IMG/VR virus record: IMGVR_UViG_3300027985_000918
Location: 248,001 to 312,000 of that record
DNA: 64,000 bases
Direction: 5' to 3' (one strand)
The position numbers and the translations under genes are program-made. Under the pieces are notes generated by a model. That model searched no databases and was not told the origin of the DNA. It was given only the letters and a program-made list of their open reading frames with translations. Below, in pieces: positions 9,918 through 54,149 of the stretch; the stretch's first letter is position 1, and each line of letters begins with the position of its first letter.

Positions 9918-9927
9918 CCGTCCTCCG

Positions 9928-16953: not shown

Positions 16954-17189
16954 TAGCTACCTCCCCCGTGCTTAATCAGGGCGAGCTTCTGCAAGGCCTC
17001 AGCCTTCTTGCCTTCCCACTCTGCGAGCTGCTGCTCCAGGATGCTGCGAAGGCTAAGGAGTGCCCGAGCCTGCTCGGTGGCAAATGCTGGACGAAACGTA
17101 GTCCCCCCACCGGCATCCCCCCAGGCCCCAGCCTTCCGGCCAATCTTCTCCAACTCCTGCCGAGCCTCTTCGGGTGTCAACGGTTTCAT
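16953..17189 (-). CDS. Small hypothetical coiled-coil protein
   Basis: 78 aa; overlaps both neighbours (ATGA and TAATG). Confidence 0.65.
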   Translation of the reverse strand: MKPLTPEEARQELEKIGRKAGAWGDAGGGTTFRPAFATEQARALLSLRSILEQQLAEWEGKKAEALQKLALIKHGGGS

Positions 17190-39277: not shown

Positions 39278-42200
39278 TCACCCCACTCTTCCGGCCATGA
39301 CCCGCTTGAGCTTAGATTGGTTCTGGGTCCACCCGTGGGGGCTGGCGTACTCGTGGTAGTTGATGTACACGTCACCGCCCCCTCCCCCGCCTCGACTTAG
39401 CGGACCACCAGCCTTGCTAGCGACCACCTGCACATCATCCTGAGTGCTAATCCTCTGTCCGTACACACCACCTTTACCAATGTGCATTAGGTAATCTTGT
39501 GCCACACCAGCAGCTTCAAACACGGGGAGGCCCATCTCCGTGAACTTCTCACGGACGGACTTACCGCCGACAACCGTGTCCAGATGCTTAGCAATCTCTG
39601 CAGGCATCTCCCCCGACTCCCGATATTGGGTTGCCAAACCCAAAAAATCGTCCCGGAGGAGTCCTGTCTCAACTCCGGAGAGTCCTGCCGCCATCTGGGT
39701 AGCCATATTCTCCGCAGTCAGCATTGTGGCCTGCTTTCGCCACTCCTCCCCAATAGCCTTGGGTGCTTCCCCGCCCTTCCCATGAAGCCTTTGGGTTCGA
39801 CGCCAGTCCTCCCTCCCATAAGCCATCAAAGCATCTTCCTGGGCCTTCTTGATCATGTCCTCACCGGACATTGGCGCAGTGCCAACACTGGCCCCCCTAC
39901 CCCCCTGAGCCCCCAAACCCACGGTTGCCAGCAGCCCAAAGTGCCTTTCCCGTGCCTGGGACTGACGAGCAACCAGCTCTTCTTCGGACCCCACCCCCTC
40001 CCGAAGAAGCATTCTCTGCACGCCTTTTTTCTTGATAGCGGAGATCTGCTCCTTGGACATACCAGCTTTCCCACGGAGAGCCTTTTCGATACTCTTGGGA
40101 CCCACACCAGCCTCAATATCCCTCCTCAGCTCACTAGCCCCCTTGTCCGTAAACCACCCGCTCTTGTTATAGCTCTGAGCTTCCCGCAGATGCTCCTCCT
40201 TGACCGCCTTACGGCCACGGAGAACCCTAAGCTCCTCAGCTTTAACCTTCAAGGCTGCCTGCGCCCTTTCTCTGTCGGGTCCCGAGGAAGCGTTCATTTC
40301 CTTACGAAGTTCACTCATCTCCTGGGAAATACCCCGCTCCTTCGCCCTCATGTCTCTAATCTCACGGGTATATCCGGAAACAATCCTCTCCCTCTCAGCT
40401 TTCTCACCGCCGCTAAGTCCACCCATCCAAGATGAGATCCGCTCTACCGAGGTATAGATCTGCTCCAGCCAATACTCCACGCCTCTCTCCAGAAGAGACG
40501 CAATATCCGTAGTGTTGGCGGCGATCTCTGCCGCCAACTTGATGTCGGCAGGTACCGCCTGCTGTGCGGCCTCCTTAAACACCTGACCCTGGGTCTGAAT
40601 ATAGTCCTCCAGGCTCTTGAGGCTGCTAGTACCCCACTCGATCTCTCCGGTGCTTTCATTGAACGAAGCGGCCAAGACACGCCCCTGATCGTCAATAGCA
40701 GCCCCGAACGCCTTAGCCTGCTCTCTCTGCTGCTCCGGAGTAACCTGCTTACCCTCCATCTTCCTAAGAGTGTTCCAGTTGCCATACATGGCCTCTGAAA
40801 TCCGCAAAAGTTGCTCCCTCTCCTCACCCGTAACCCCAGCCACACCCTCAAACCCCATCATCTCCCGGGGGTTCATCATGTGGAGTGGCTTTCCGATAAT
40901 AGTTTGTCCGTGAGCCATCTTGGCTGCCAACTTTCCACCCATGTCCAGAGACCCCATCCGGACAGCCCTAGCACCCCGACCACCTACAGCACCCTCGGCA
41001 ACGTCCATCAAATTCGTAAGGGAGCGAGTTAGGTCGTGCTGTCCCGTAAGACGCATACTAGCCAGCAAGCCTTCTCTCTGCTTACGGCCCATACTCCCAA
41101 GTCTCTTGGATAGACCGGCTCCCGTTGCAGTATCCAAGTCCGAAAAACCGAGGAGACCCATAATTCGGGCCTGTGCCCCCTTATCCTGCATGGTTCTGAG
41201 TTTCGAGATGAAATCCGTTCCGGTAGCCTCAGCAGACCTAGTGAAAATGCCTTTGCTCCCCCTAGTGAGCATGTCCCTCTTCCAACGGTCCTGCATGGAC
41301 TCCCCAGCAAACCCCTTGGTAAGCTGCTGAAGAAAATCACCGCCCGTCTTAGCACCGAGAACCTGACCAAGACGGATGAGCAAACCACCGGCCTCTTCAA
41401 GACGGACGTTGTACATGCCCATTCCGGATGTGGCCTGAAGAATCATGCCGTAGAATCGCTTTACTCCGAACCCAGACTCCTTGGCAGCCATCGTAACTCC
41501 GGACAATCCTTCGTTGATGTACTGAAGGTCAGCCCCCAGGTCCTCCATCCACGACCCCATATTCCCGGCCATGTCTTGTGCAGAGACCCCCAGGAGCTTT
41601 GAATAAGCCAGAGCGGATTGGGTATACTCCCGCAACCTCTCCATCTCATCATTGAATCCCGCAGCCTCCGCCCTCATCTCCCTCAGAGTCTTCCCCGCAT
41701 CAGCATAGGCACCAAGGATCACCAAATGGTCCTTAGCGGTTGTCCCCCAGATGTTGTTGAAGGCAAAGGCCCCTTCCCCTGCGGTAAATGTCCTTCGCAC
41801 ATCGGCGATTTTTTTGCCTACGTCGTCGAACACACTCCCTAGTTCAGCCCCAGCTATCCCGCTTTCCAGAATAGTCCGGTTCAACTGCTTCATCTGGGAT
41901 TCTGCCGAGATGAAAATGGCCACCAAAGCTGCTACGGAGCCCACCAAGGCCCCCACTGCCAAGATGTAGGGACCGAGCTTAGACAAAAGGCCACCCACCT
42001 CACCCAACGCCTTGGCAAACCCTCCGCTTCCCTTGGACCCTGCCTTGATTGCTGCTCCCCCAGCCGCCTGGACCCCTTGCCCCACCCCCTTGATGGCACC
42101 AGAGAAATCTCCCCCCCTGAGCTGCTCGAACAGCCCCTTGGCGCCGTGAGCACCCGCCCCGAGGAGACCGCTAACCCCTCGGTACCCCTGAGCTGCTTGC

Positions 42201-42571
42201 AAAGCGTCCTTCCGCCGCTGATTGATACGAGCTAGCTGCCGCTGCTCAGCCTTGAACCGTTTCTCCATGGCCTGAGCCTGAATTTTGGCAGCCTTGGTAG
42301 CCCCATCCTTCTGAGCTTCCTCGATCAGCCTGGAGAGCTTAGTGTATGTGTCCGTCAACCCCCGAAGATTCTTGCCCGAAAACCCCGTGCGGAGGGCATC
42401 CCCGATGGTTTGACCGAATGTAGATTCAGCCTTCTTCTGGACCCGGGACCACTTGGAGAGGAAGTCCCGGTCGTCAAACGCCATGACCTTCTTGATCTGC
42501 TTGGCGACGGCATCGGCCCCGGCAAGCTCAAGATCTGCAATCAGCCGAATGACGGTTTCCTGGTTACTCAT
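39278..42571 (-). CDS. Tape measure protein
   Basis: 1097 aa; Ala/Gly/Lys/Arg/Met-rich helical composition, hydrophobic stretch ILAVGALVGSVAALVAIFI, canonical position after tube and chaperones. Confidence 0.8.
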   Translation of the reverse strand: MSNQETVIRLIADLELAGADAVAKQIKKVMAFDDRDFLSKWSRVQKKAESTFGQTIGDALRTGFSGKNLRGLTDTYTKLSRLIEEAQKDGATKAAKIQAQAMEKRFKAEQRQLARINQRRKDALQAAQGYRGVSGLLGAGAHGAKGLFEQLRGGDFSGAIKGVGQGVQAAGGAAIKAGSKGSGGFAKALGEVGGLLSKLGPYILAVGALVGSVAALVAIFISAESQMKQLNRTILESGIAGAELGSVFDDVGKKIADVRRTFTAGEGAFAFNNIWGTTAKDHLVILGAYADAGKTLREMRAEAAGFNDEMERLREYTQSALAYSKLLGVSAQDMAGNMGSWMEDLGADLQYINEGLSGVTMAAKESGFGVKRFYGMILQATSGMGMYNVRLEEAGGLLIRLGQVLGAKTGGDFLQQLTKGFAGESMQDRWKRDMLTRGSKGIFTRSAEATGTDFISKLRTMQDKGAQARIMGLLGFSDLDTATGAGLSKRLGSMGRKQREGLLASMRLTGQHDLTRSLTNLMDVAEGAVGGRGARAVRMGSLDMGGKLAAKMAHGQTIIGKPLHMMNPREMMGFEGVAGVTGEEREQLLRISEAMYGNWNTLRKMEGKQVTPEQQREQAKAFGAAIDDQGRVLAASFNESTGEIEWGTSSLKSLEDYIQTQGQVFKEAAQQAVPADIKLAAEIAANTTDIASLLERGVEYWLEQIYTSVERISSWMGGLSGGEKAERERIVSGYTREIRDMRAKERGISQEMSELRKEMNASSGPDRERAQAALKVKAEELRVLRGRKAVKEEHLREAQSYNKSGWFTDKGASELRRDIEAGVGPKSIEKALRGKAGMSKEQISAIKKKGVQRMLLREGVGSEEELVARQSQARERHFGLLATVGLGAQGGRGASVGTAPMSGEDMIKKAQEDALMAYGREDWRRTQRLHGKGGEAPKAIGEEWRKQATMLTAENMATQMAAGLSGVETGLLRDDFLGLATQYRESGEMPAEIAKHLDTVVGGKSVREKFTEMGLPVFEAAGVAQDYLMHIGKGGVYGQRISTQDDVQVVASKAGGPLSRGGGGGGDVYINYHEYASPHGWTQNQSKLKRVMAGRVG

Positions 42572-43960: not shown

Positions 43961-45202
43961 TCAGCGTCGGGGGGTTCCCCGGCGGAACCGGGGATTCAGG
44001 CTACCGCTCGTGGACGGGTTGACCGCCACCCTCCCGGGACCCTGACCATCTGTGGAGACACTCTCCAACACCACGGGGTCTTCAGGCTTGAACACGGGGG
44101 CATCCCCGATGGTCCCAACCTTGCGATGCTGAGCCTCCCGAATGGCCTCCGTCAACTGCTCCTGGGGACGAACATCTCGGTCGGCGTACTGGGCCGCCAG
44201 ATGAGGGGGGGTTCTCCTCCCCAACCCCTGCTGGTGTGCGGCAGTCAGAGCCGAACCGTCGGGGTTCAAAGCGTTGTGCAGGGAGAGTCCCGCCTGAGCC
44301 CTCCGCTTCAACTGACGGGCATTCTCTGCGGCCACTGCAGCAGCCAAACCGTCAGTATCCCCGGTATCCACAAAGGACTCCTGGAACTCAGGGAGCAGAT
44401 CAACGGGGCTCCCCGATGTCTCCTTCTTCGGATGGGGAGCTGGGGCTTCCTGCGGAGGAGGCGCCTGCGTGGGAACGATCCGCTGGCGAGCCTTCGAGGG
44501 ATGAGCTTCCGGAACGAAAGGGATGAACCCATCCTCATCGGAATCGTCCAGAGGCTCTTCCTCATCGGGATCTGCGGTTTCAGCGGTGGTCTGGGAGGGG
44601 TCCGGGCGCTCCACCCCGTTCATCTCTGCCATCCGATGGACACGGTTGGTGAACGGGTCCTGAATCCCGGAGGCCTCCGCCTCCTTGGATTCCCGCAACT
44701 CTGCCAAGCGTTCCTCAAGCCTCTGGATCTCGGTGTCGATATCCACGGGCTCAAACTCGATGGAGTCCTCCGCAACCTTCTCGACCTTCGCCAGCAGCTC
44801 TGCATACTTGCGAAACACCCCAATCAGAAGATGCCGGGTCCACCCCCGGATGATCTTCTGGAGGGCTTCGGCCTTGGGGATTTTGACGATCTTACCGTTG
44901 GGTAGCTTCTCTCCGGTTTCGATGAACTCCGCATCCCGCAGGTCTAGATCATCGATCTCGACCAGAGCGTAAGAGATGATCGCCGTCTTGAAGCGGTCCA
45001 GAAAAGCCATCGCCGTGTGCTGCTCCCCCTCCTCACCGGAGTTGAGAGCCACAGCGGCATACTTCTGCACCTCCACCTCTTCCTCGGGCATGAGAACCCG
45101 AAGTGTCATGGTGGTGTTGTTGATCTCAAAGGAGAGTTCGCCCTTACCGACTTCCTCGACTGCGGCGAGAGCCTGCTCCAGGGCTTGCAAATTGATCGAC
45201 AT
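43961..45202 (-). CDS. Putative tail assembly chaperone 1
   Basis: 413 aa; FEIN....TLRVL.PEEE.EV N-terminus resembles tail chaperones; acidic/Pro-rich C-terminus; between tube and tape measure. Confidence 0.55.
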   Translation of the reverse strand: MSINLQALEQALAAVEEVGKGELSFEINNTTMTLRVLMPEEEVEVQKYAAVALNSGEEGEQHTAMAFLDRFKTAIISYALVEIDDLDLRDAEFIETGEKLPNGKIVKIPKAEALQKIIRGWTRHLLIGVFRKYAELLAKVEKVAEDSIEFEPVDIDTEIQRLEERLAELRESKEAEASGIQDPFTNRVHRMAEMNGVERPDPSQTTAETADPDEEEPLDDSDEDGFIPFVPEAHPSKARQRIVPTQAPPPQEAPAPHPKKETSGSPVDLLPEFQESFVDTGDTDGLAAAVAAENARQLKRRAQAGLSLHNALNPDGSALTAAHQQGLGRRTPPHLAAQYADRDVRPQEQLTEAIREAQHRKVGTIGDAPVFKPEDPVVLESVSTDGQGPGRVAVNPSTSGSLNPRFRRGTPRR

Positions 45203-45238
45203 GTGCAGCTTCCCTCTTCACGATGAATCGTATACAGA

Positions 45239-45386
45239 GAAGCAGCATGGCCTGGCCTGGACAGCTCATTCGGCGTCGGACGATCTGGCGTGACGCATCT
45301 TCCCCACCCCCAAAAAAGGAGAGGAAATCAGCACAAAAAGTCGGTTCTCATCTATCCGTAGCGTCTTAGGCCAACCCGGCTGCTTC
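45239..45386 (-). ncRNA. Putative structured cis-regulatory RNA (copy 2) in leader of chaperone gene
   Basis: Nested complementary segments gaagcagc/gctgcttc, tggcct/aggcca, ggatag/ctgtcc; shares three ordered sequence blocks with the sheath leader. Confidence 0.55.
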
Positions 45387-45450
45387 CAGGTTCAGGCCCC
45401 TTACCGGGGCCTTAGCCTACTCTACCGGGTGAGAGTGAGGAAGTGCTGAT

Positions 45451-46284
45451 TTACACGTTCAGGCTGATCGCCCCACCACCCCCGACACCGCCACCTACCT
45501 GAACAGAAGAGGCGAACGGGTTGCCAGCCTCGATGGCATTCTCCGAGAACCGGATAGACCCGAGCTGACCGATAGTGGGGTCATTGCCGGTTGCCAGGAA
45601 CTCTCCGTAAACGCTAGCAAAATCGTGGACGTCGGAAATCATCACATCCCCAGACTCCATGATCATGCCGCTATCCTTGGCGAAGGTCGTGCTCCACGTC
45701 GTGAACCAACACGCCTCGTAGATGGTGATAACGGCGCTGTGCCCACGGTTGTCGCCCGGGAAGTTGGAGTTGTCCGGAGTGACCTGGGGAAAACCGATGG
45801 CCGAGACACCGCCATCGAATTGACCAGGGGTACCGGAACGCCCAACGTTAGCAACCTGGAGATCCGCATCCACGAGGGTCGAAAACACGAGCTGCTGCTC
45901 GATATCGAACGGCCACTTGTGGTGCTTGAGCGACCGGACCGGGCCATCCACGCCAGAGGCGTAGCCCGTGGCCTGCCAGAGGTTGCTCAGGTACATGAGA
46001 GCCCTCTCGAAGCTGGCGCTCATGGGCTCGGTCACCGACGGGACCAGCTCGGCCACCTGATCACCGAAGCCGACCCCCCGAACCGGCTCTACGGTACGAC
46101 TCTCGTTCGGGTTGAAGCTGGAGACCACGCCCATCTGGTGGAGAGCGGTCGAATCCCCATAGGCAGGGGTCAGAAGGCGCACCTTCTGGGAAACGGCCGT
46201 CCTAGTGTTCGGGGAGGTCCCGAAATCATAGACGTAGCTAGTCCCCTGGAGCCCGTTCTGGGGGTTGTTGTCAAGGTTCGGCAT
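45451..46284 (-). CDS. Tail tube protein
   Basis: Start reassigned to the ATG at 46284 (GGAGG RBS), 277 aa; SFNPNESRTVEPVRGVG.GD..AELVP and PFDIEQ...TIYEACWF.TWS tube-like motifs; next minus-strand gene after the sheath. Confidence 0.8.
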   Translation of the reverse strand: MPNLDNNPQNGLQGTSYVYDFGTSPNTRTAVSQKVRLLTPAYGDSTALHQMGVVSSFNPNESRTVEPVRGVGFGDQVAELVPSVTEPMSASFERALMYLSNLWQATGYASGVDGPVRSLKHHKWPFDIEQQLVFSTLVDADLQVANVGRSGTPGQFDGGVSAIGFPQVTPDNSNFPGDNRGHSAVITIYEACWFTTWSTTFAKDSGMIMESGDVMISDVHDFASVYGEFLATGNDPTIGQLGSIRFSENAIEAGNPFASSVQVGGGVGGGGAISLNV

Positions 46285-46346
46285 CTCAGTCCTCCACGAG
46301 GGGTATGGTGAGGGCACAAAGGCTCTCCGCTCACACTTGTGTGGGC

Positions 46347-46361
46347 TATAGGCCCGCAATC
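46347..46361 (-). promoter_or_regulatory. Candidate late promoter motif (GAT-N6-CCTATA)
   Basis: Minus-strand GATTGCGGGCCTATA upstream of the tube gene; downstream GCGGAGA is shared with the 11133 copy. Confidence 0.6.
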
Positions 46362-46407
46362 GAGATCCGGCTACTTGACTTGAATGAGAGAGCACCCAGG
46401 ATGAAAG

Positions 46408-46854
46408 TTGATGAGGCGGCTCCTAACAGGACAGCCTCCCGGTGAGGCTCACCCCAGCTCGAAACTCTCTGAGGCCGAAGTACAGGCTATCCGGGAACGG
46501 GTATGTGCGGGTGAACTCCAGATGTCCCTAGCTGCCGAGTTCAAAGTCAGTCCCTCCACCATCTGCAAAATCGCCAACGGGAGGTCGTGGTCCCACCTGG
46601 GAGCCCCTCCCCCGATCCCCAAGACCCGAGGGAGTGCCCGACCCACATCCCGGCTGACTGAGGCGGACATCGAACCCATCTGCAAAGCCATTATGAAAGG
46701 CATCAAGATCCGTGCTCTGGCTCGACGCTATGGGGTTTGTCCCTCCACCATCACCAAGATCTGGAAAGGTGAGACATGGACCCACGTCCCCCGGCCAGGC
46801 CTACCGAACCTCGACCCCCCGACCACATCCAGAAAAAAGGTCTGGGAGCGCTGA
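46408..46854 (+). CDS. Tandem helix-turn-helix DNA-binding protein (HNH-associated C-terminal domain x2)
   Basis: Two repeats: GEAHPSSKLSEAEVQAIR...LAAEFKVSPSTICKIANGRSWSH and GSARPTSRLTEADIEPI...LARRYGVCPSTITKIWKGETWTH. Confidence 0.75.
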   Translation: MMRRLLTGQPPGEAHPSSKLSEAEVQAIRERVCAGELQMSLAAEFKVSPSTICKIANGRSWSHLGAPPPIPKTRGSARPTSRLTEADIEPICKAIMKGIKIRALARRYGVCPSTITKIWKGETWTHVPRPGLPNLDPPTTSRKKVWER

Positions 46855-46859
46855 AGGGG

Positions 46860-46888
46860 GGTAACAAACTTCCCTGAGGCGGGTATAG
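46860..46888 (+). promoter_or_regulatory. Candidate ECF-like promoter GGTAAC-N17-GTATAG
   Basis: About 60 nt upstream of the Hc1-like gene. Confidence 0.55.
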
Positions 46889-46947
46889 CCCCCACGGGCC
46901 GACGCCCAAACAAGCTGGGGCAAAAACCACCAGCCACAGGAGAACCA

Positions 46948-47124
46948 ATGCGCACCCAAATCGAGAACCTGATCAATCTGCTGACCAACACCCTCCCCGA
47001 CGCCGACAAGGTGGACATGGGGCAGAAGGCGGCGGGGACCCGAGTCCGCAAGGCCCTCCAGGCCGTCCGCACCGAATGTGCCAACCTGCGGAAGGAGTCC
47101 CTGGGGACGGAGAAGGTGGGCTGA
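46948..47124 (+). CDS. Histone H1-like (Hc1 family) small protein, 58 aa (below ORF-track cutoff)
   Basis: MRTQIENLINLLTNTLPDADKVDMGQKAAGTRVRKALQAVRTECANLRKESLGTEKVG; G.KAAGTR.RK...L..RKES is the Hc1-like signature; AGGAG RBS and its own terminator. Confidence 0.8.
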   Translation: MRTQIENLINLLTNTLPDADKVDMGQKAAGTRVRKALQAVRTECANLRKESLGTEKVG

Positions 47125-47145
47125 CCCCCAACATCTGACCCAACG

Positions 47146-47185
47146 GAGAAAGCCCCTGCCAGAGTACCCTGGCAGGGGCTTTCTC
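47146..47185 (+). terminator. Intrinsic terminator-like hairpin
   Basis: Perfect 17-bp stem gagaaagcccctgccag / ctggcaggggctttctc with a 6-nt loop. Confidence 0.8.
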
Positions 47186-47198
47186 GTATCTGAAGGTA

Positions 47199-47226
47199 GG
47201 TAGCCAAGAATTCTCTTTGGGTGCAT
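47199..47226 (+). promoter_or_regulatory. Variant ECF-like promoter GGTAGC-N16-GTGCAT
   Basis: Just after the terminator and upstream of the phosphoesterase; context aaggtaggtagc resembles aagggtaggtaac at 11161. Confidence 0.4.
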
Positions 47227-47250
47227 ACGGTGGCGGGCACGGAGAACCAG

Positions 47251-48078
47251 ATGAAGATCATGACGCTGTCCGATCTCCACCATGGGAAGTGGGGAACCTG
47301 GGGGATGAAGGCTGTCCAGAGGGCAGGCAAAGAGGCCAGAGACCACCAAATCGATGTCCTCCTGTTGGGAGGGGACCTGGCGGAACCTTCCCCCGAAAAC
47401 CAGTACCGGGGTGAGGTACTCTCCAAGATCATGCAGCTTCCGATCCCCCACAAACTCTGGGTCATCGGGAACAACGACCTGGAGGACCTGCGGGGTCCGA
47501 TCAGCCAATATGCCCAGGAGGCCCACTCCCTAGTGAGTGCCGACGGCATTCAGGTCCTGGACTACGCCCCCGTCACCATCGACGGCGTGACCTTCGTGGG
47601 GAACCTGGGGTGGTTTGACGGGTCACTTTGGGGGATGGGATCTACCCCCCTCATCGACCCAGAAGGCTGGGCGCCTATCTCTTTCCAGGAGGCCCAGAGC
47701 AAAACGGACGCCTGGACCAGGCATGAGCTGGGTGAGAGGATGGACCTGACCTCGGATGAGCTGTTTGAGCTGTGCCAAAACACTTTGCACTCCCACCTGC
47801 GGGAAGCGGGACAAAACCGCATAGTGGTGATGACACACACATCCCCCACCCCGTCCATGTGCATGTACGGGCACAACCCAAAATTCGACTTCCTGAACTA
47901 CTGCATGGGCTGGGATGACCTGTCGAAGAAAGCCCTCCGCCCCCCATTGTCCTCCTGGAAGCCCACTCTCCAGCTCTGCGGTCACACTCACCGCTTCAAA
48001 ATGGTCTTTGCTGGGGAAAACCCCCCACTGGTGAACGTATCGGGAGAGGGCCAGCCCCGAATCTTCGAGATCAGGTAA
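47251..48078 (+). CDS. Calcineurin-like metallophosphoesterase
   Basis: SDLH, GGDL, IGNND (GNHD variant), THT.P and CGHTH motifs; start reassigned to the ATG at 47251 after GGAG. Confidence 0.85.
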   Translation: MKIMTLSDLHHGKWGTWGMKAVQRAGKEARDHQIDVLLLGGDLAEPSPENQYRGEVLSKIMQLPIPHKLWVIGNNDLEDLRGPISQYAQEAHSLVSADGIQVLDYAPVTIDGVTFVGNLGWFDGSLWGMGSTPLIDPEGWAPISFQEAQSKTDAWTRHELGERMDLTSDELFELCQNTLHSHLREAGQNRIVVMTHTSPTPSMCMYGHNPKFDFLNYCMGWDDLSKKALRPPLSSWKPTLQLCGHTHRFKMVFAGENPPLVNVSGEGQPRIFEIR

Positions 48079-48130
48079 CCTTTCCTGGAACGGATCTACT
48101 GGAGGCTGCACCCCCAGAAGGGGGACTGAG

Positions 48131-48170
48131 AGGAGGACCGCCCTGGGGGGGTCCTCCTCCCAGGGCGGTC
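48131..48170. terminator. Hairpin(s) between convergent genes, likely terminator of the sheath gene
   Basis: 12-bp stem gaccgccctggg/cccagggcggtc, with an overlapping alternative 9-bp stem aggaggacc/ggtcctcct. Confidence 0.6.
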
Positions 48171-48175
48171 GATTC

Positions 48176-51100
48176 TTACAAACTTGCCCGGAGGTGGAAC
48201 TCAAGGGTGATGTACAGCAACGGGAACACCGGGCTGTAGTAGGCCACCACCTCAGCCACCGTCGGATCGTCCGCAGCCACGTTGGCCTTGACACCCGTGT
48301 AGGCGGAGATGATCTGCTGCTTCACCAAGGACTTCAGCATCATGCTCAGCCGGCCTTCGATCTGGGTGAGGATGCCGGGAAGAAACTTGATGCCGATGTA
48401 CCGCTCCAGAACCCCACGGCTCTGCCGCTGAACCTCGTCAGCGATCATCTGAACCGTCGGGAGCTTCAGGAGGCGGTAGCTCTCCTGGGACGGCTGGATG
48501 GTCGAGAGACCGTGACGGACCCGCAGGTACGGGGGCCGCTCTTCCAACACGATGACGCCCTTGGTTGCTACCTGGTTCATCTCGACGGCGTCGAGGCGCC
48601 GACCAAGCTGGCTGAACCCGACAAGGTTCCGTCCCGTCCACGGGGTCGCCACATCCACGCTCGGAGACACAACGGAACCGGCCAGGGCGGCGGCAATCAT
48701 CGTGCCGTCCACCAGGTGCTCCTTCGTGGATCCGAAAGCATTCGTGAGCTGGATAACCGCCACGTCCGGGTAAACCAACCGCATACGGGAGCTGTTCAGC
48801 GTCTGAGCCAAACTCATGGCGTTCTCGGGGGTCTTACCCGCCGACATGCCAATGATGCTCGTCCGCTCGCTCTTGTAGCGGATGGAGGACTGGATGCTGT
48901 TGGACCGGCTCAAGAGCTGATACAGCTCCGTGGAATCACCCCTCAGCGGGACGATGATGTCCGGGTTCACCCGACCCGGCAGCACCCCTTCCAGAGCCTC
49001 GATAGCCGCCCGGTAGCTCGTCACCGAAGCATAGCTGCTGTCGGTGTCCCGAACCACCTGCTTGATCCCCAGGAGAACGGCCCCGTTCAGGGTCGCCAGG
49101 AACGCCGCCAAGGAGACCGGATTGTCCGGGTGAATCGTGCCGTAGGCCGCCTCCACCGACGACAACTTCGTGTAGAAGGCCGTGGAGAAGTCGTCCTTCT
49201 GGTACGTGTACGTGACGTAGTACACGTCCCCGTTCAGAGGCTCGTTCCCCCCTCGCTCATAGGTGCTCACAACGGCCGTGTCACCCACCGCCATGCCCAG
49301 GGTGTTTGCCACCTTCAGCTCCAACCCCTTGAGCGCCAGAACCGGGAGGTTGGCGTCCGTGGTGAAAGTGCTGCTGACAGCGAACTGGAACGTGGCATTG
49401 ACCCCGGTGGGGTAGTTCACCCAGGGGCCGGTCGGGTTGCTGCTGTAGCCACGGGGAAGCACAGTGAACGTGAGTCCCGTGACAGAATCCCGGTAGGTCT
49501 GGCCAACCACACCGTCAGATCCAGTGCCGTTGTTCAGGACGGAGTCATTGGCAGAGCCAGATCCGTTCGGCTGGTTCGACACGACGAAGAACCCGTCGAT
49601 GCCCGCCTCACCGACCGCACCGTCCAGGCTCTCAGCGTTGACCCCCGTTCCCGGAGCCAGCCAGGAGTCCGTGACCACCGAAGCCACCGTCGGGTCACGC
49701 AGCTCGACGATGGAGCTGGTACCCAGGGACTGGCTCAAGAGGAACAGGAAATCGTTCCCAGCAGAGTCCTCAATCACCGAGGCCATCCCGAGCGTGGCGA
49801 ACATCTCGTTTGGATTCGGATTGACTGCCGTGAAGTCGAGTGCCCAGGTGGCGAACGTGCTGTGGCGGTTCTCATTCAGGGCCGACACCAGGGTACGGGC
49901 ATCGGGCAGCTCCCGCTGGGAGAGATCTCCCACCGTGAGCCCGAGAACGCTGGCAGCGGAGCCACCCGTGACCTCAACCTTGGAGAATACGTCGTACCGG
50001 GCCGATGTGAGGCCAAGACCCGCACCAACCTGGTAGACGATGCCGTTGGCGAACACTGCGGCGGCCGAGGCGCCGAACACCGTCGTAGCGGCGGCGATAG
50101 CGTCAATGATCTGGTCAAGCACCGAACCGTTGCTCGTCCCCGAAGCAGGGCCGAGGTCCGTCGCCGTGCCAGCCGCCGAAGAGGTGAACTGGACAGTGAT
50201 CGGGATGCCGTCGATGTTGATGACCAGCTCGTCGTTCGCCGCCTGGGAACCCGTTCCGTCGTAGAACACGACCTCGGGCTCAGATGTGGCAATGTCCTGG
50301 CCGCCCGTGAAACCGACCTGGCTCTCCAGGTAGGCAGGAACCACGGTGGAAGGACCACCCGCACCAAAGTCTCCTGTGGAGAGAGAGAAGCGGTCGAGAG
50401 CCGTACCCGCTCCCACCCGAAGCTCCATCTGGGCGACTTCGGACTGGGAAAGATCCCCACCAACCACCGACGGGATCAGGCGGTTGCGGAGGATAACCCG
50501 GTCGTACAGAGCACCGGATGCCCCGGCCACCGAGATGGTCTTCATCACGTCGCCAGCACACACGACGTGGGCCTGGCCTCCGCCTACGGCTGCCGCCGTC
50601 GAGAACCCCAACAGCTTGGCGAGGCTGTCGGCATCGGCAATGCCGTTGTTGATGAAGGTGAAGAACGCTTGGGCATCATCACCCGCAGCCCGGCATTTGA
50701 CCACGATGCGGCCGGAAGAGTCAGCCTCGACCACGAAGCCGGCACCGTCGAAGGCTGCTGCCGCCCCAACCCATCCCCCTGCCCCGTTCAAAGCAGCCTG
50801 TAGAGCAGCGGCGAGCGCTGCCGGACTGGTGTAAGGGCCAGCGGCCAAAGAGATAACCGCCGATGTGTAGGTACCTGCGGAATCTCCCGTGTACACGAAA
50901 CGGATGTCCGAGAAGGCCGTCAGATCCACCGGGCCGTCGATGACGGTGGCTCCCTTGTACTGAGCCATCGTGTCCGGATTGTACAGGCGCATCCCGGACC
51001 CGCCACCCACGTCCGACGCTGCTCCGGTCCAGGCTGCCACAGTGGCGATTCGGGTGGTCGAGTTGTAGTCCGTGATCGTGCGGACATCGCCCGCACCCGC

Positions 51101-53494
51101 AGCCATCGCCGGGATGAGGCTCACGTCACCGACCACGACATTCCAGCCAACGAAATACCCGTTGATGCTGCTACCGGGAACCGAGGCTGGCACCCGGAAC
51201 GTGGTGGCCGAGCCACCAGCATCCGAGGTGAACTGCACACCGTTGGCAGCCTCATTCACCGAGTCGTCCAGATCGGACACGTCGGAAGCCGTCTGAGCCG
51301 GGATGATGACCGGAATCTCGACCCCGTCGATGTAAAGGATCAGGTCCTCGTCGGTCGCCAGGGTGTAGCTCTGACCAAGGGTAGCTCCGGTGCCACCGTC
51401 GTAGTTGATCTCACCGCTGACCAAGTTCGCTGGGACACCGCCACCGTGGGTGGTCGGGTCGAGCAGGCTGATACCGGCCAGGCCAGCGTCCAGCTCCGTA
51501 TTGTCCAGACGGATGCGAACCTGGTCCGACTCATTCGGGATGAACTCGTAGGGGCCGTACCCCGGAACCGAGTACATCGCCTGAGTGGCGTCCTTGGACT
51601 CGAACTGGACCGTCACCACCTCGTTGATGGGGCCAGTGAACTCGTCGCCGGACAACCCCTCGAACCGGGCATCGGGAGTCAGCTCGGAACCGCTGGGCCA
51701 CTCCAGGGTCACTCCCGTGAGGGAGCTTCCCTTAGTCGTCGTGGAGAACGCAGCGTTGTAGATGGAGTCCCCGGCCTCATCGGTGATGGTGTACTGGCCC
51801 GTGCCACTGGCACCGATGAGGCGGGCAGTGAGGGTGAATTCCCCATCGGTCAGGGTGTTGTAGTAGAACGAGGCGTAGACCGTGGCACCCGTCGGGACGG
51901 ACTCGGCTAGCTCGATGATGTTCCCCTCGACCTTGGTCACCGTAACGGCACCCCGGTCCAGAGCGTCTTGGACGCTGTAGCCCCAAAAGGCGTTGACCAC
52001 GTCAGGCCGGTTGGTCGGGAGGTCGATGCGGCCGTTGGAGACCGTCTGGAACAGGCTGGTACCCAGAGGGGTGTTCCGACCATTACCCAGGGTCGGGGAG
52101 AACGGCAAGGTGAATTGGGTCTTGCTCTCGAAAGCGGAACCTCCGGAGGACAGAACCACCGGGGAGCAAGGGCTCATGAAGGTCTTGTCATCGACCAGCG
52201 TACCGCTGACCTGGGTCTCGTTGAACAGCTCAGAGCCCGAACTAGTGGTGTCCGCCTCGACCGTCCAGGCCGTACCCCAGAGGATCTTGTCGTCCTTCAA
52301 GACGAAGTCGGAACCCTGGTTGAACCCAACACCGTCGGGGACCTCACCAAGAGAGGTGACATCGACCACATTGTTGTGGGCAAGGTAGTCGAACGTGTTC
52401 TGCCAGGAGTTGAACCAGTAGGACACAAGGACCGTGGCGCCCACCTTCGGGGCCGTGGGCAGGGTGACCGCCCGAGTCGTCCCATCCACGCTGGTCGGAA
52501 TGACCTGAGTGCCGTTCACAAGAACCGTTACCTTCGAGGTGTCGGTCGTGGTGACGCCGCCATTGGTGCCGTCCACGATGGGTCCTTGGAACGTATAGAA
52601 CGTCTTCCGCCGACTGGTGGTCTGACCGCTCAGGAGACCGAGAGCGGAGTTGGCCGAACCGGCCCCCACCGTCACGTCGTTGGTCGCTGTCAGGCTCAGG
52701 GCACTGTGGCCGAACTGGTTCAGGAACGTGCTGGCCGTCAGGGTGCCCAGAGCTGCCGAACTGATCAGGTTGGCTACCTGCTTCATGGTATACGTGCCGG
52801 GGCTCAGCACAGATGTGTACTCCGTGCCGTCCACCGTCACGACGAACTCATTGTTGCCCGGGGTTACCACAGCACCGTTGGCATCAAGAGCATCCGCCCG
52901 CAGAATCACCGTCTCGGTACCCGGGGTTTGGGCATTTACGTCCTGGATGCCGGAGATGGCCCGGATGAGAGCCGGGTCCACGGACACCTGATCGGACAGA
53001 TCGTCCGTGATGTAGGTGTCGGTTCGGTTGAAGTAGTAGGTGACCCGCACGTCGGCATCGGCTGCCGGGGCCTGGGCCAACTCGACAATGCCCGTCAGGC
53101 CGTTCACCGACAGCACCACGATGGGGGTGCCGTTGATGGTGACAGAGACATCGGAGCGGCTGTAGGACACCGTCCCAGTACCGTCTCCGGTCACGATGGG
53201 CAGCTCACGGACCTTCAGCTTGGTGCGGACCCCGTCCCAGTTACCGACAGTCACGGCTCCCGCAGAGGAGATGGAGACCACGGCTCGGCCAGTGGCGTCC
53301 TCCTTGACACGTCGCTGGTCGATGTCAGCCGAAGACCCACGGACCACTTCCAGATTCCGCTGAATCAGGAACTCATTGCCTTCACCAATGAAAACGGGGA
53401 TTTTGAGGGTGTCGAGATTGCCCGCAATGGGGTTCTCGTACAGAGTTCGGGTGTACACGCTCGGAGGGGCGTACTGCTCGCCGGGGAAAGCCAT
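48176..53494 (-). CDS. Contractile tail sheath protein (1772 aa, large insertions)
   Basis: N-terminal YAPPSVYTRT...IPVFIGEG; C-terminal RVRHGLST...ADEVQRQSR..LERYIG.KF...DPTVAEVVAYYSPVFPLLYITLEF sheath signature; ATG at 53494 after GAGAGG. Confidence 0.9.
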   Translation of the reverse strand: MAFPGEQYAPPSVYTRTLYENPIAGNLDTLKIPVFIGEGNEFLIQRNLEVVRGSSADIDQRRVKEDATGRAVVSISSAGAVTVGNWDGVRTKLKVRELPIVTGDGTGTVSYSRSDVSVTINGTPIVVLSVNGLTGIVELAQAPAADADVRVTYYFNRTDTYITDDLSDQVSVDPALIRAISGIQDVNAQTPGTETVILRADALDANGAVVTPGNNEFVVTVDGTEYTSVLSPGTYTMKQVANLISSAALGTLTASTFLNQFGHSALSLTATNDVTVGAGSANSALGLLSGQTTSRRKTFYTFQGPIVDGTNGGVTTTDTSKVTVLVNGTQVIPTSVDGTTRAVTLPTAPKVGATVLVSYWFNSWQNTFDYLAHNNVVDVTSLGEVPDGVGFNQGSDFVLKDDKILWGTAWTVEADTTSSGSELFNETQVSGTLVDDKTFMSPCSPVVLSSGGSAFESKTQFTLPFSPTLGNGRNTPLGTSLFQTVSNGRIDLPTNRPDVVNAFWGYSVQDALDRGAVTVTKVEGNIIELAESVPTGATVYASFYYNTLTDGEFTLTARLIGASGTGQYTITDEAGDSIYNAAFSTTTKGSSLTGVTLEWPSGSELTPDARFEGLSGDEFTGPINEVVTVQFESKDATQAMYSVPGYGPYEFIPNESDQVRIRLDNTELDAGLAGISLLDPTTHGGGVPANLVSGEINYDGGTGATLGQSYTLATDEDLILYIDGVEIPVIIPAQTASDVSDLDDSVNEAANGVQFTSDAGGSATTFRVPASVPGSSINGYFVGWNVVVGDVSLIPAMAAGAGDVRTITDYNSTTRIATVAAWTGAASDVGGGSGMRLYNPDTMAQYKGATVIDGPVDLTAFSDIRFVYTGDSAGTYTSAVISLAAGPYTSPAALAAALQAALNGAGGWVGAAAAFDGAGFVVEADSSGRIVVKCRAAGDDAQAFFTFINNGIADADSLAKLLGFSTAAAVGGGQAHVVCAGDVMKTISVAGASGALYDRVILRNRLIPSVVGGDLSQSEVAQMELRVGAGTALDRFSLSTGDFGAGGPSTVVPAYLESQVGFTGGQDIATSEPEVVFYDGTGSQAANDELVINIDGIPITVQFTSSAAGTATDLGPASGTSNGSVLDQIIDAIAAATTVFGASAAAVFANGIVYQVGAGLGLTSARYDVFSKVEVTGGSAASVLGLTVGDLSQRELPDARTLVSALNENRHSTFATWALDFTAVNPNPNEMFATLGMASVIEDSAGNDFLFLLSQSLGTSSIVELRDPTVASVVTDSWLAPGTGVNAESLDGAVGEAGIDGFFVVSNQPNGSGSANDSVLNNGTGSDGVVGQTYRDSVTGLTFTVLPRGYSSNPTGPWVNYPTGVNATFQFAVSSTFTTDANLPVLALKGLELKVANTLGMAVGDTAVVSTYERGGNEPLNGDVYYVTYTYQKDDFSTAFYTKLSSVEAAYGTIHPDNPVSLAAFLATLNGAVLLGIKQVVRDTDSSYASVTSYRAAIEALEGVLPGRVNPDIIVPLRGDSTELYQLLSRSNSIQSSIRYKSERTSIIGMSAGKTPENAMSLAQTLNSSRMRLVYPDVAVIQLTNAFGSTKEHLVDGTMIAAALAGSVVSPSVDVATPWTGRNLVGFSQLGRRLDAVEMNQVATKGVIVLEERPPYLRVRHGLSTIQPSQESYRLLKLPTVQMIADEVQRQSRGVLERYIGIKFLPGILTQIEGRLSMMLKSLVKQQIISAYTGVKANVAADDPTVAEVVAYYSPVFPLLYITLEFHLRASL

Positions 53495-53512
53495 CTTCGT
53501 ACCTCTCTTCAA

Positions 53513-53642
53513 GGTGGTCAGTTTTCCAGCTCAAAAAAGCATCCGTTGTGCTTGCCGCATTTCGCCTCCCTTTGGGGGGAGGTAACCGGAAAGTTCTTCC
53601 GGAGCCCGAGTTGCGCTTATCTTTGCTGGCTATCTGACCACC
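53513..53642 (-). ncRNA. Putative structured cis-regulatory RNA (copy 1) in sheath leader
   Basis: Closing stem ggtggtcag/ctgaccacc, inner ccagc/gctgg and cgca/tgcg, hairpins ccggaa/ttccgg, cctccc/gggagg and aagca/tgctt; ends just 5' of the RBS. Confidence 0.65.
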
Positions 53643-53696
53643 GCAAAGCGGGGATGGCTTTCAGGGGCTATTTGCCCTCTGCTGATAAGCCGGGGG

Positions 53697-53711
53697 TATA
53701 GGCGTCCTACC
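53697..53711 (-). promoter_or_regulatory. Candidate late promoter motif (GGT-N6-CCTATA)
   Basis: Minus-strand GGTAGGACGCCTATA, about 200 nt upstream of the sheath ATG. Confidence 0.6.
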
Positions 53712-53714
53712 GAC

Positions 53715-54149
53715 TCACCCCTCTTTCACCTCACCCAGCCCTGCTTGCATGGCCCGGCTATTGATGCGGTTCGCCCTCACGGCGAATCCTTTCTCATCTG
53801 GGGTGATAGTTCTGTACTGCCCGTCAGGGTCTCTGGAGATCAAACGAGGGTCGACTCCTTCCCGAATGAGCTTCCTCTTGTCAGCCTGGCGCTTCTCAAT
53901 AACTGCCATGCTCTGTTCGGCGCTCTTGCCGATGACCCGGTCGATGTGGGTATCCAAGTCATGAATGCCCGTATTCTGTGGCCCCGGTCCGTTCACGGCC
54001 TTGTTGAACCTCCCGCTCACCGTCGCCGGCATCATGCGGGGCGCCAACTCACCGCAGTCGGGGCACTTCTGAGGCTCAGCCGCTTTGGATGCTTTGTTGG
54101 ATGCTGGGAACTGCACGCCGCAGTCACACTGATAGCGGTACGAAGGCAT
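53715..54149 (-). CDS. FmdB-family zinc-ribbon protein
   Basis: MPSYRYQCDCG...CPDCG N-terminus. Confidence 0.8.
   Translation of the reverse strand: MPSYRYQCDCGVQFPASNKASKAAEPQKCPDCGELAPRMMPATVSGRFNKAVNGPGPQNTGIHDLDTHIDRVIGKSAEQSMAVIEKRQADKRKLIREGVDPRLISRDPDGQYRTITPDEKGFAVRANRINSRAMQAGLGEVKEG

Follow-up and report, generated by a model that had tools for sequence, protein, structure and literature searches.

What are two long non-coding gaps doing in the tail-gene cluster of a huge phage, one in front of the tail sheath gene and the other in front of a second tail-module gene, and do they carry the same RNA? The 64,000-nucleotide stretch analysed here (henceforth the window) is part of a 402,383-bp IMG/VR contig, and a first-pass annotation of its sequence had proposed that both gaps contain one undescribed cis-regulatory RNA, acting through protein binding, processing or translation and setting tail-protein stoichiometry. 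The observation was fully confirmed, since every block, spacing and stem that had been listed is present, on the minus (mRNA) strand. The interpretation as an undescribed cis-regulatory RNA is largely right, though not supported in every part, and it is the related phages, rather than the two copies in the window, that support it.

Two leaders in the tail-gene cluster

The first gap (220 nt, 53495–53714) lies between a Zn-ribbon gene and the tail sheath gene (48176–53494, 1772 aa; PHROG 2839 tail sheath, 1.2e-23 over the C-terminal part; 676 homologues of about 1770 aa). The second (248 nt, 45203–45450) separates a tube-like gene from the gene we refer to as B (43961–45202, 413 aa). Unless stated otherwise, all features are on the minus strand. 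The B protein has an N-terminal alpha/beta domain, a Pro-rich linker and a C-terminal NPRF motif, but gave no match in Pfam, PHROG, PDB or Foldseek searches. The tube-like protein (45451–46287; the ORF runs to a GTG at 46395, but the probable start is the ATG at 46287) is highly conserved, with 69–93% identity across the clade, and its homologue in phage Tunturi_5 is annotated as a virion structural protein. The setting originally described needs one correction, as the sheath and the tube-like gene are not a contiguous module: two plus-strand genes, a metallophosphoesterase (47221–48078) and an HTH protein (46408–46854), lie between them and leave further non-coding stretches there.

Both leaders share AGAT[AG]AG (53616–53622 and 45347–45353), ATGCG[GT]CA[AC]GC (53550–53560 and 45288–45298) and TGAGCTG (53527–53533 and 45262–45268), with spacings of exactly 55/48 and 16/19 nt, followed by TGAAGAG (53505–53511 and 45214–45220) 10 and 11 nt before the start codons at 53494 and 45202. 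The stems are CCAGC/GCTGG (53625–53629 and 53526–53530) and GGTGGTCAG/CTGACCACC (53634–53642 and 53513–53521) in the sheath leader, and GGATAG/CTGTCC (45352–45357 and 45259–45264) and GAAGCAGC/GCTGCTTC (within 45379–45387 and 45236–45246) in the B leader. The sheath gap folds better than its shuffles (z = -3.40, 0 of 200 as good), the B gap less clearly so (z = -2.11, 6 of 200). However, comparison with shuffled sequence, which had been named beforehand as a possible refutation, showed that the similarity between the two gaps is not by itself more than chance: local and glocal alignment scores fell inside the range of dinucleotide shuffles (17 versus 17.2 +/- 2.2, and 111 versus 105 +/- 7). 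The combined pattern is unique in the window, but it was derived from these two sites and it hits more than 119 unrelated viral contigs.

Comparison with related huge phages

To resolve this, homologues of the B and sheath genes were retrieved with their flanks. In this clade of huge phages (sheath about 1,770 aa) long leaders sit at the same two places, gaps of 224–257 nt are conserved in front of B, and 24 distinct B leaders share the architecture described below. A covariance model built from B leaders only (R1) finds the sheath leaders of other genomes (relatives L190 at E = 5e-6, L149 at 2.5e-5 and L126 at 0.013), and all 40 of its hits in 1.33 Mb are on the sense strand and lie in one of the two leaders. 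After one iteration, the resulting model (R2) gives 50 hits, all on the sense strand and in or next to these tail genes, 49 of them in these two leaders. Rfam searches gave no hit at gathering thresholds and only noise at E < 10, and we found no paper describing the element. It is a sense-strand, conserved, structured RNA element, present in both leaders as one family.

The repeating module consists of a C-rich/G-rich hairpin with a bulged U (CCUCYCC...GGRGA[U]GG), the motif UNAGAY, about 35–43 nt rich in purines with NGAY repeats, and a YUUGNGCUR box, and leaders carry one to three modules. Two of the three blocks shared in the window turned out to be specific to this genome and not to the family, as AGAT[AG]AG and ATGCGNCANGC reduce to UNAGAY/GAUG-type motifs in relatives, and the AUG is not conserved. 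The stems first picked correspond to helices with covariation across genomes (P1 and P2 in the B leader, the P1b and P2 equivalents in the sheath leader), although P2 shows conservation but no genome-specific covariation.

In the B leader, a long stalk (P1, P1b and P2) encloses one module. From the 5′ end there is a -10-like promoter candidate, GGTAGAGT (45419–45426); a GGTAnnnT element is present in 20 of 24 B leaders at -187 to -244, against 0.14 expected, its function being inferred. The hairpin GGCCCCGG-U-AAGGGGCC (45395–45411) follows, probably at the 5′ end of the transcript, where a role as 5′ stabiliser is inferred. Next come the 5′ strand of P1, henceforth X (GGAAGCAGC, 45379–45387), which resembles a Shine-Dalgarno sequence, the 5′ strand of P1b (CGGGUUGGCCU, 45368–45378) followed by UAAGAC (45363–45368), and the 5′ strand of P2 (GGAUAG, 45352–45357), which overlaps AGAUGAG (45347–45353). 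A first box (UUGUGCUG, 45329–45336; family consensus YUUGNGCUR, from two leader alignments) precedes the module hairpin P3 (CCUCUCC-U6-GGGGG[U]GG, 45304–45324, with a bulged U), then GGAAGAUG; R1 detects this region (45295–45355) at E = 1.4e-9. The second box (AUGAGCUG, 45259–45269), which contains TGAGCTG, overlaps the 3′ strand of P2 (CUGUCC) and is followed by the 3′ strands of P1b (AGGCCAGGCC, 45249–45258) and of P1, henceforth Y (GCUGCUUCUCU, 45236–45246). Y is also the anti-Shine-Dalgarno strand, complementary to the Shine-Dalgarno region of B, henceforth Z (AGAGGGAAGC, 45208–45217). In the window, Y pairs with X at -15.2 kcal/mol or with Z at -16.3 kcal/mol.

The P3 hairpin was 87% paired across aligned cells, against 44–63% in slid controls, with compensatory changes in 5 of 7 pairs and 0 of 500 shuffles as good, and its many U-G pairs fix the strand. 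P1, examined on a MAFFT alignment that was not fitted to any structure, was 90% paired against 26–61% when slid, with 4 of 7 pairs compensatory (for example A-U 11 and G-C 5 at one pair). Cognate duplex energies were also compared with those obtained by permuting partners among genomes: X:Y gave -13.08 versus -11.03 +/- 0.45, Y:Z -15.01 versus -12.13 +/- 0.48 and P1b -12.45 versus -9.75 +/- 0.51, each with 0 of 5000 permutations as low, whereas the X:Z control showed no effect; both pairings of Y thus co-vary genome by genome. Given that the sequences are phylogenetically related, these shuffle and permutation counts are not true probabilities. For P2 the mean duplex energy was -6.89 against a shuffled -4.79 +/- 0.40, with the variants GGACAG, GGACGG and GAUAG/CUAUC.

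The sheath copy in the window is a weak, degenerate member. Its module hairpin H1 (CCCCGC-UUU-GCGG[U]GG) plus UCAGAUAG (53630–53653) is a partial R2 hit, and a second partial hit (53518–53546) covers the box UUUGAGCUG (53527–53535), which overlaps the 3′ strand of P2; the two partial hits reach only E = 2 and 3.9 window-wide, and 0.007 (H1) and 0.014 (box) within the gap, these E-values being rough. The same H1 element in the nearest relative, L142, scores E = 4e-4. A long-range helix, the P1b equivalent, joins GGUGGUCAG (53634–53642), which overlaps the 3′ strand of H1, to CUGACCACC (53513–53521), just before the Shine-Dalgarno region; in L142 the partner reads CUGACUACC, which keeps every pair (G-C becomes G-U). 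Inside it, CCAGC (53625–53629), the 5′ strand of the P2 equivalent, pairs with GCUGG (53526–53530). A P3-like hairpin without a bulged U (CCUCCC-CCCAAA-GGGAGG, 53565–53582), followed by CGAAAUG, gives a weak R2 hit (53558–53582, E = 0.21 within the gap). The Shine-Dalgarno region (GAAGAGAGG, 53502–53510) pairs with 53644–53652 in the minimum-energy fold, but this pairing is weak evidence as it is not conserved in L142.

A putative translational switch and its alternatives

The explanation we favor, with moderate confidence, is that both gaps are 5′ leader RNAs of one undescribed family that, in a clade of huge phages, sits at two syntenic places, before the giant sheath gene and before the gene that follows the tube-like protein. 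In the B leader, Y (GCUGYUUCCC) can pair with the 5′-proximal X (GGAARCAGC), closing the stalk around the junction, or with Z (GGGRAA...) directly in front of the start codon. In this view a closed stalk would leave the ribosome-binding site free while an open one would let a Y:Z hairpin hide it, the riboswitch-like logic of a translational ON switch. Of the three modes first proposed, the sequence evidence points most directly to translation; a role in tail-protein stoichiometry remains a reasonable guess. The module hairpin looks like a copy of the Y:Z start-site hairpin, with a G-run resembling a Shine-Dalgarno sequence and often an AUG about 8 nt later, and R2 weakly matches the start-site hairpin of B itself in relatives L193 and L209. 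We therefore think that the effector most likely recognises that hairpin type, and would be a phage protein or the 30S subunit rather than a metabolite, its binding to the junction and modules setting the balance. The sheath copy would be a degenerate two-module version with its long-range helix ending next to the Shine-Dalgarno region. The comparisons establish the family, its strand, its two positions, the covarying helices and the mutually exclusive X:Y and Y:Z pairings, whereas the regulation of translation, its direction and the effector are inferred.

Removing X in silico lowers the predicted Shine-Dalgarno accessibility from 0.43 to 0.32 (paired Wilcoxon p = 0.0002), but the predicted equilibrium accessibility in native leaders does not differ from that of leaders with a shuffled upstream part (B, 0.405 versus 0.414; sheath, 0.354 versus 0.394), so that these thermodynamic predictions do not themselves show regulation. 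Sheath leaders vary in module number and most lack a conserved closing helix. The element also appears dispensable, as the closest relatives by B protein (L127 and L128) carry a small ORF instead of the B leader, and the more distant LR745208.1 and cultured phage Tunturi_5 lack the motif.

Among the alternatives, all of which we consider unlikely, a metabolite-sensing riboswitch survives best. Here the junction (UNAGAC, the boxes and the base of P3) would form an aptamer for a small molecule, such as a nucleotide or an energy signal, which would lock P1 and turn on translation of tail genes. The architecture is typical, with P1 closing a multi-helix junction with about 20 highly conserved unpaired positions, a 3′ strand of P1 that doubles as the anti-Shine-Dalgarno strand, and two predicted states that are nearly iso-energetic. 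However, the one to three modules of sheath leaders and the frequent absence of their closing helix fit repeated binding sites better than one fixed pocket, the linkers vary in sequence and length, close relatives dispense with the element, and no known aptamer matches.

Slightly less likely is a processing or stability element, in which the long irregular stalk would be an RNase III-type site or would pair the 5′ end to protect the mRNA from 5′-end-dependent decay, any effect on the Shine-Dalgarno region being secondary. The stalk has about 20 or more base pairs with internal loops, like the RNase III sites between phage T7 genes; X lies 0–25 nt downstream of the conserved -10-like element, so P1 probably pairs the very 5′ end of the transcript; and the window copy has its 5′ hairpin. 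This explains neither why Y co-varies with the Shine-Dalgarno region nor the conserved single-stranded boxes and bulged-U hairpin, and many sheath leaders have no long stalk.

A processive antitermination site of the nut or put type, loading a factor onto RNA polymerase to read through the very long tail operons, seems improbable. The leaders do precede very long genes and operons (the 5.3-kb sheath; B followed by genes of 458, 1097 ... 3900 aa), a box followed by a hairpin recalls boxA-boxB, and some boxes read GCUUUUUA, which is like boxA. Yet the hairpin loops are not conserved, whereas boxB recognition is loop-specific, consensus scans found no terminator-like sites in or after the leaders, and the Y:Z pairing is left unexplained. 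DNA-level operator or promoter sites for a phage transcription factor or RNA polymerase, with incidental stems, are very doubtful. The short conserved boxes repeated in one orientation, the nearby promoter-like elements and the divergently transcribed HTH gene next to the tube-like gene would suit them, but there are compensatory changes in four helices, including many U-G pairs that would be C-A mismatches on the other strand, co-variation over about 140 nt, and hits on the sense strand only. Finally, leader-peptide control, suggested by an SD-like run, an AUG and an in-frame UGA inside the conserved box (TGAGCTG) in both window copies (9- and 10-codon peptides starting MR(Q/H)A), whose translation would remodel the leader, is contradicted by the relatives, in many of which (L134, L138, L139, L147, L179, L207) AGAC replaces the AUG, while the ORF ranges from 1 to 26 codons, the peptide is not conserved and the spacing between G-run and AUG falls to 1 nt in L126.

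Genomic setting of the two leaders

The stretch analyzed is part of a 402,383-bp IMG/VR contig of an uncultured huge phage, with a GC content of about 60% and nearly all genes in this part located on the minus strand. Several of them are very large (3900, 1772, 1748, 1171 and 1097 aa). The 1772-aa ORF at 48176–53494 is a tail sheath, given that its C-terminal part matches PHROG 2839 (1.2e-23) and that it also matches the sheaths of phage G, SPO1 and Tunturi_5 by tblastn. Directly upstream of the sheath leader, here and in most related loci, an FmdB-type Zn-ribbon protein (144 aa, 53715–54149) is encoded. The second gap precedes a 413-aa ORF of unknown function, henceforth B (43961–45202), for which no match was found in Pfam, PHROGs, PDB sequences or Foldseek. 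B follows a tube-like virion protein (45451–46287/46395) that is far more conserved (69–93% identity) than the sheath or B. Its annotated-length ORF starts at a GTG (46395), but relatives indicate the ATG at 46287, and the AlphaFold model was of too low confidence (pLDDT 31) to suggest a fold. Between the sheath and the tube-like gene lie two plus-strand genes, a double-HTH protein at 46408–46854 (HTH_7, 4.5e-9) and a calcineurin-like metallophosphoesterase at 47221–48078 (7.8e-11), while the overlapping minus-strand ORFs at 46728–47549 and 47623–48294 have no family hits and are probably spurious. The term "sheath-tube module" used in the first-pass annotation is therefore only loosely correct. 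An HTH gene in this divergent position recurs in relatives (loci L127, L128 and L133; L numbers designate the loci of relatives).

The first-pass annotation had described two long gaps sharing three sequence blocks with similar spacing and several stems, and this observation held, as every block, spacing and stem was present on the mRNA strand where it had been placed. Both gaps fold into closed multi-branch structures, with z = -3.4 against shuffles for the sheath gap and z = -2.1 for the B gap. However, the two gaps are not more similar to each other than shuffled versions are, and the three-block pattern, which was derived after the fact, returned more than 119 unrelated hits when IMG/VR viral contigs were scanned with it. 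The window alone therefore cannot separate homology from chance. The interpretation offered at that stage, an undescribed cis-regulatory RNA, was partly supported by the comparison with relatives described below.

A first metagenome scan with the C-terminus of the sheath found nothing. B has homologues at 33–62% identity and the sheath has 676 homologues of about 1770 aa, and their contigs showed that a gap of 224–257 nt upstream of B is conserved, with 24 distinct B leaders sharing the architecture, and that long leaders also occur upstream of the sheath. The leaders share a module made of a hairpin with a C-rich 5' strand and a G-rich 3' strand ending in G-R-[U]-G-G, where the U is bulged, followed directly by UNAGAY, then by a purine-rich stretch of about 35–43 nt containing NGAY repeats, and finally by a YUUGNGCUR box. 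The TGAGCTG block of the first-pass annotation is this box, whereas its other two blocks are local variants of UNAGAY/GAUG motifs. In the closest relatives by B protein (58–61% identity) the RNA motif is absent and a small ORF of 94–117 aa occupies the place of the B leader (L127 1735–2088; L128/L129 about 9658–9942). No motif was found either in the more distant relatives LR745208.1 and the cultured phage Tunturi_5.

One RNA family in two leaders

A covariance model (R1) was built only from the module hairpin (P3) region of 20 B leaders and searched over 1.33 Mb from 78 loci. It gave 40 hits at E < 1, all on the sense strand and all in a B leader or a sheath leader. They include sheath leaders of genomes that contributed nothing to that part of the model (L190 at 5e-6, L149 at 2.5e-5, L146 at 2e-4 and L126 at 0.013). 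After one iteration, the resulting model (R2) gave 50 hits with the same distribution, with one weak exception just after a sheath gene (L179, E = 0.3), as well as two weak hits on the start-site hairpin of the B gene itself. In the window the B copy scores E = 1e-9. The sheath copy gives only two partial hits on the correct strand, at 53630–53653 (hairpin plus UCAGAUAG) and at 53518–53546 (ACGGAUG...UUGAGCUG), with E = 2 and 3.9 over the window and 0.007 and 0.014 when only the gap is searched. The nearest relative, L142, gives 4e-4 and 0.007. The sheath copy here is therefore a degenerate two-module member, accepted mainly because it lies at the syntenic place.

RNAalifold on the MAFFT alignments predicted almost nothing because the stems are out of register, so structures were given by hand and checked with slid and shuffled controls. 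The P3 hairpin is well supported, with 87% of cells paired against 44–63% in slid controls, compensatory changes in 5 of 7 pairs and no shuffle out of 500 doing as well, and many U-G pairs fix the strand as RNA sense. On a MAFFT alignment of 24 B leaders that was not fitted to any structure, the long-range helix P1 (GGAARCAGC with GCUGYUUCC, about 140 nt apart) is 90% paired, against 26–61% in slid controls, and 4 of 7 pairs are compensatory. Two further helices extend it into a stalk. P1b has genome-specific complementarity (-12.45 kcal/mol against -9.75 +/- 0.51 when partners are permuted among genomes, 0 of 5000 permutations as low), while P2 (GGAYAG with CUGUCC) is conserved rather than co-varying. 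The stems of the first-pass annotation map onto these helices: in the B leader, GAAGCAGC/GCUGCUUC is P1 and GGAUAG/CUGUCC is P2; in the sheath leader, GGUGGUCAG/CUGACCACC is the P1b equivalent and CCAGC/GCUGG is the P2 equivalent.

Alternative pairings in the B leader and their possible meaning

In B leaders the 3' strand of P1 (Y) is complementary not only to the 5' strand (X) but also to the Shine-Dalgarno region (Z) just before the start codon, with values in the window of -15.2 kcal/mol for X:Y and -16.3 kcal/mol for Y:Z. Across the 24 leaders the cognate mean for X:Y is -13.1 kcal/mol, against -6.95 +/- 0.5 with Y shuffled and -11.0 +/- 0.45 with partners permuted, and for Y:Z it is -15.0, against -9.5 +/- 0.5 and -12.1 +/- 0.48, respectively. 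Both give 0 of 5000 permutations as low, and an X:Z control shows nothing. X, Y and Z thus co-evolve as a three-strand, two-state system, in which a closed stalk leaves the Shine-Dalgarno region free and an open stalk allows a local Y:Z hairpin to cover it. These strong, mutually exclusive and co-varying pairings were established for B leaders and not for sheath leaders. Removing X in silico lowers predicted accessibility from 0.43 to 0.32 (p = 0.0002). On the other hand, predicted equilibrium accessibility in native leaders equals that of leaders with a shuffled upstream part, i.e. no net sequestration of the Shine-Dalgarno region relative to shuffled leaders was seen, which fits a balanced switch but is not positive evidence of regulation. 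A conserved -10-like element, GGTAnnnT(G), lies 0–25 nt upstream of X in 20 of 24 B leaders (45419–45426 in the window), against 0.14 expected per leader; it is a candidate phage promoter, and X is therefore probably at the 5' end of the transcript. A CTATA(C/G)CC element, seen by eye only, lies upstream of the sheath leader at 53693–53713 (within the dyad TCGGTAGGACGCCTATACCCC) and upstream of the tube-like gene at about 46340–46352 (GGGCCTATAGCCC), and similar strings occur in many relatives' sheath leaders; it may be a second promoter type.

Box 1, the YUUGNGCUR-type box preceding P3, together with the 5' strand of P3 resembles Y, and the 3' strand of P3 plus UCAGAUG resembles Z plus the start codon. 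The module is therefore a paralogue of the real start-site hairpin. An attenuator-like third register (X with box 1/P3 5' strand, and P3 3' strand with Y) was tested and is not supported, as there is no genome-specific complementarity and the energies are barely above shuffles, so the module is more likely a recognition element than a shifting strand. The freely varying loops, the conserved bulge and flanks, the variable number of modules in sheath leaders and the repeat-rich linkers favour, by inference only, a protein or the 30S subunit over a metabolite as the effector. What the analysis shows is a real, conserved, undescribed cis-acting leader RNA family of huge-phage tail genes with, in the B leader, well-supported alternative pairings that free or cover the Shine-Dalgarno region; that these pairings regulate translation, what effector would bind and the physiological role can only be inferred.

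Although we consider it unlikely on present evidence, the leaders might be an assembly-feedback device built from decoy start sites. In this view a phage protein made from this tail module, or the Zn-ribbon protein (a candidate trans factor), would bind the bulged-U hairpins that copy the real ribosome-binding hairpin. Binding would shift the balance between stalk and anti-Shine-Dalgarno pairing, so that translation of the sheath and of the genes downstream of the tube-like gene follows the pool of unassembled tail parts. This would be a new class of protein-responsive riboregulator specific to huge phages.

Very little is known about how huge phages (above 200 kb) control expression of their structural genes, and almost none of this clade is cultured. 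The leaders would represent a covariation-supported, clade-wide RNA family in front of two key tail-module genes and a candidate new family for Rfam, with an explicit and testable putative switch of three short strands that gives a concrete handle on post-transcriptional control of virion assembly in these phages, and with an unusual design in which the sensor contains copies of the regulated ribosome-binding hairpin. If the effector is a tail or assembly protein, it would parallel flagellin/CsrA-type homeostasis in a virus; if it is a metabolite, it would be a new riboswitch class.

Comparison with described RNA elements

No Rfam 15 family reached its gathering threshold in the window or in seven relatives' loci (129 kb in all), and at E < 10 the two gaps give only noise, the best being the serC leader at 16.6 bits against a threshold of 35. 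Full-text literature searches found no description of the motif. A 2023 catalogue of 8,495 unnamed and unannotated candidate structured RNAs from IMG/VR intergenic regions (PMC10690425) may contain fragments of it. That catalogue uses the same data source (IMG/VR phage contigs) and concerns the same kind of object, covarying intergenic motifs of 29–151 nt, some of them directly upstream of genes; the paper does not mention sheath, tail or jumbo phages.

Two features expected of translational riboswitches are present in B leaders, namely a conserved structured domain supported by covariation (P1, P1b and P3, with about 24 invariant or nearly invariant columns across 24 leaders) and a strand that pairs either with the putative sensor helix or with the Shine-Dalgarno region. 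As in translational ON riboswitches such as the add adenine riboswitch of Vibrio vulnificus, P1 closes a conserved multi-helix junction and its 3' strand is shared with a hairpin that sequesters the Shine-Dalgarno region, so that a closed P1 frees the ribosome-binding site. The leaders differ from these in having no known ligand and no sequence or structural match to any Rfam aptamer, and in that the core contains a hairpin that mimics the start site, in a unit repeated in variable numbers in the sheath leaders. The coat-protein translational operators of RNA phages (the MS2, Q-beta and PP7 hairpins) also consist of a short hairpin with a single bulged base that carries or adjoins a Shine-Dalgarno sequence and an AUG, is recognised at the stem and bulge rather than by a fixed loop and links virion-protein supply to translation. 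Here, however, the bulge is a U near the base of the stem, the loops are free to vary, the hairpins are decoy copies upstream of the real start site in a dsDNA huge phage, and any binding protein is hypothetical. Phage lambda cIII mRNA and other two-conformer leaders similarly have two mutually exclusive folds of the 5' region, one of which occludes the Shine-Dalgarno region, with the balance set by a trans factor (RNase III in lambda), but the sequence and architecture are different, and here the competing strand lies about 140 nt upstream and closes a junction. With repeat-binding attenuation proteins (the TRAP trp leader, and CsrA on the hag flagellin leader) the leaders share purine-rich triplet or tetramer repeats (NGAY; some are ACGGAU-like GGA sites) lying between alternative helices upstream of a gene for a self-assembling structural protein. 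Nevertheless, the repeats are irregular, GGA is not universal (e.g. L134 and L138), no TRAP or CsrA gene was seen in the loci, and the conserved boxes and the bulged-U hairpin have no counterpart in those systems.

An RNase III processing site requires about two turns of near-continuous double-stranded RNA and cleavage by the enzyme; in B leaders P1, P1b and P2 add up to about 20–25 bp with internal loops, cleavage remaining hypothetical. Sites acting at the DNA level are argued against by the U-G pairs, the long-range covariation and the strand bias. A lambda-type nut site was rejected because the loops of the module hairpin vary freely in sequence and in length (4 to 8 or more nt), unlike the conserved GNRA-like loop of boxB, and the box only loosely resembles boxA. 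A terminator-based attenuator was rejected because a consensus scan found no terminator-like site in either gap, the hairpins being followed by UNAGAY or by the start codon and not by U runs. A leader peptide (uORF) was attractive in this window, with an SD-like run, an AUG and a UGA inside TGAGCTG, but was rejected because the AUG is replaced by AGAC in many members and the frames are 1–26 codons long without a conserved peptide. A kink-turn, which has tandem sheared G-A pairs with an invariant A on the non-bulged strand next to the C stem, fits the window's sheath copy (CCAGC-AAA-GA opposite UU-GA-GCUGG) but was rejected because across the family the position in YUUGNGCU corresponding to this A is A, U, C or G. 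For the TPP riboswitch, the L138 B leader reads CUGAGAC...ACCUGAU by eye, resembling the THI-box core, but this reading was rejected, as RF00059 does not hit L138 and other members lack these strings. A T-box leader has a stem I with a specifier loop and the conserved T-box sequence that pairs with the tRNA NCCA end; the GGGUGGU runs resemble the T-box core by eye, but this reading was rejected, as neither gap gives a T-box (RF00230) hit even at E < 10.

In L003 (about 2500–2920) a gene with repeated NUMOD-like motifs, probably a homing endonuclease, lies directly upstream of the B homologue and is followed by the same GGTAGAGT element and a short leader without the motif. Genes near the tail module of other relatives (L134, L136, L137, L139 and L130) include a Ribosomal_L12-domain protein (alone or fused to VIT/VWA), an RRM_1 protein, Hc1 histone-like proteins, Cpn10 and ROS/MucR, which are unusual for a phage structural region. 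In the window, GC content drops to 0.55 and GC skew to -0.25 at 40001–42000, inside the 1097-aa gene (39278–42571), suggesting a compositionally odd or repetitive segment. The single 3900-aa ORF (17186–28888), plus further ORFs of 1748, 1171, 1013 and 1007 aa, lie downstream in the same orientation.
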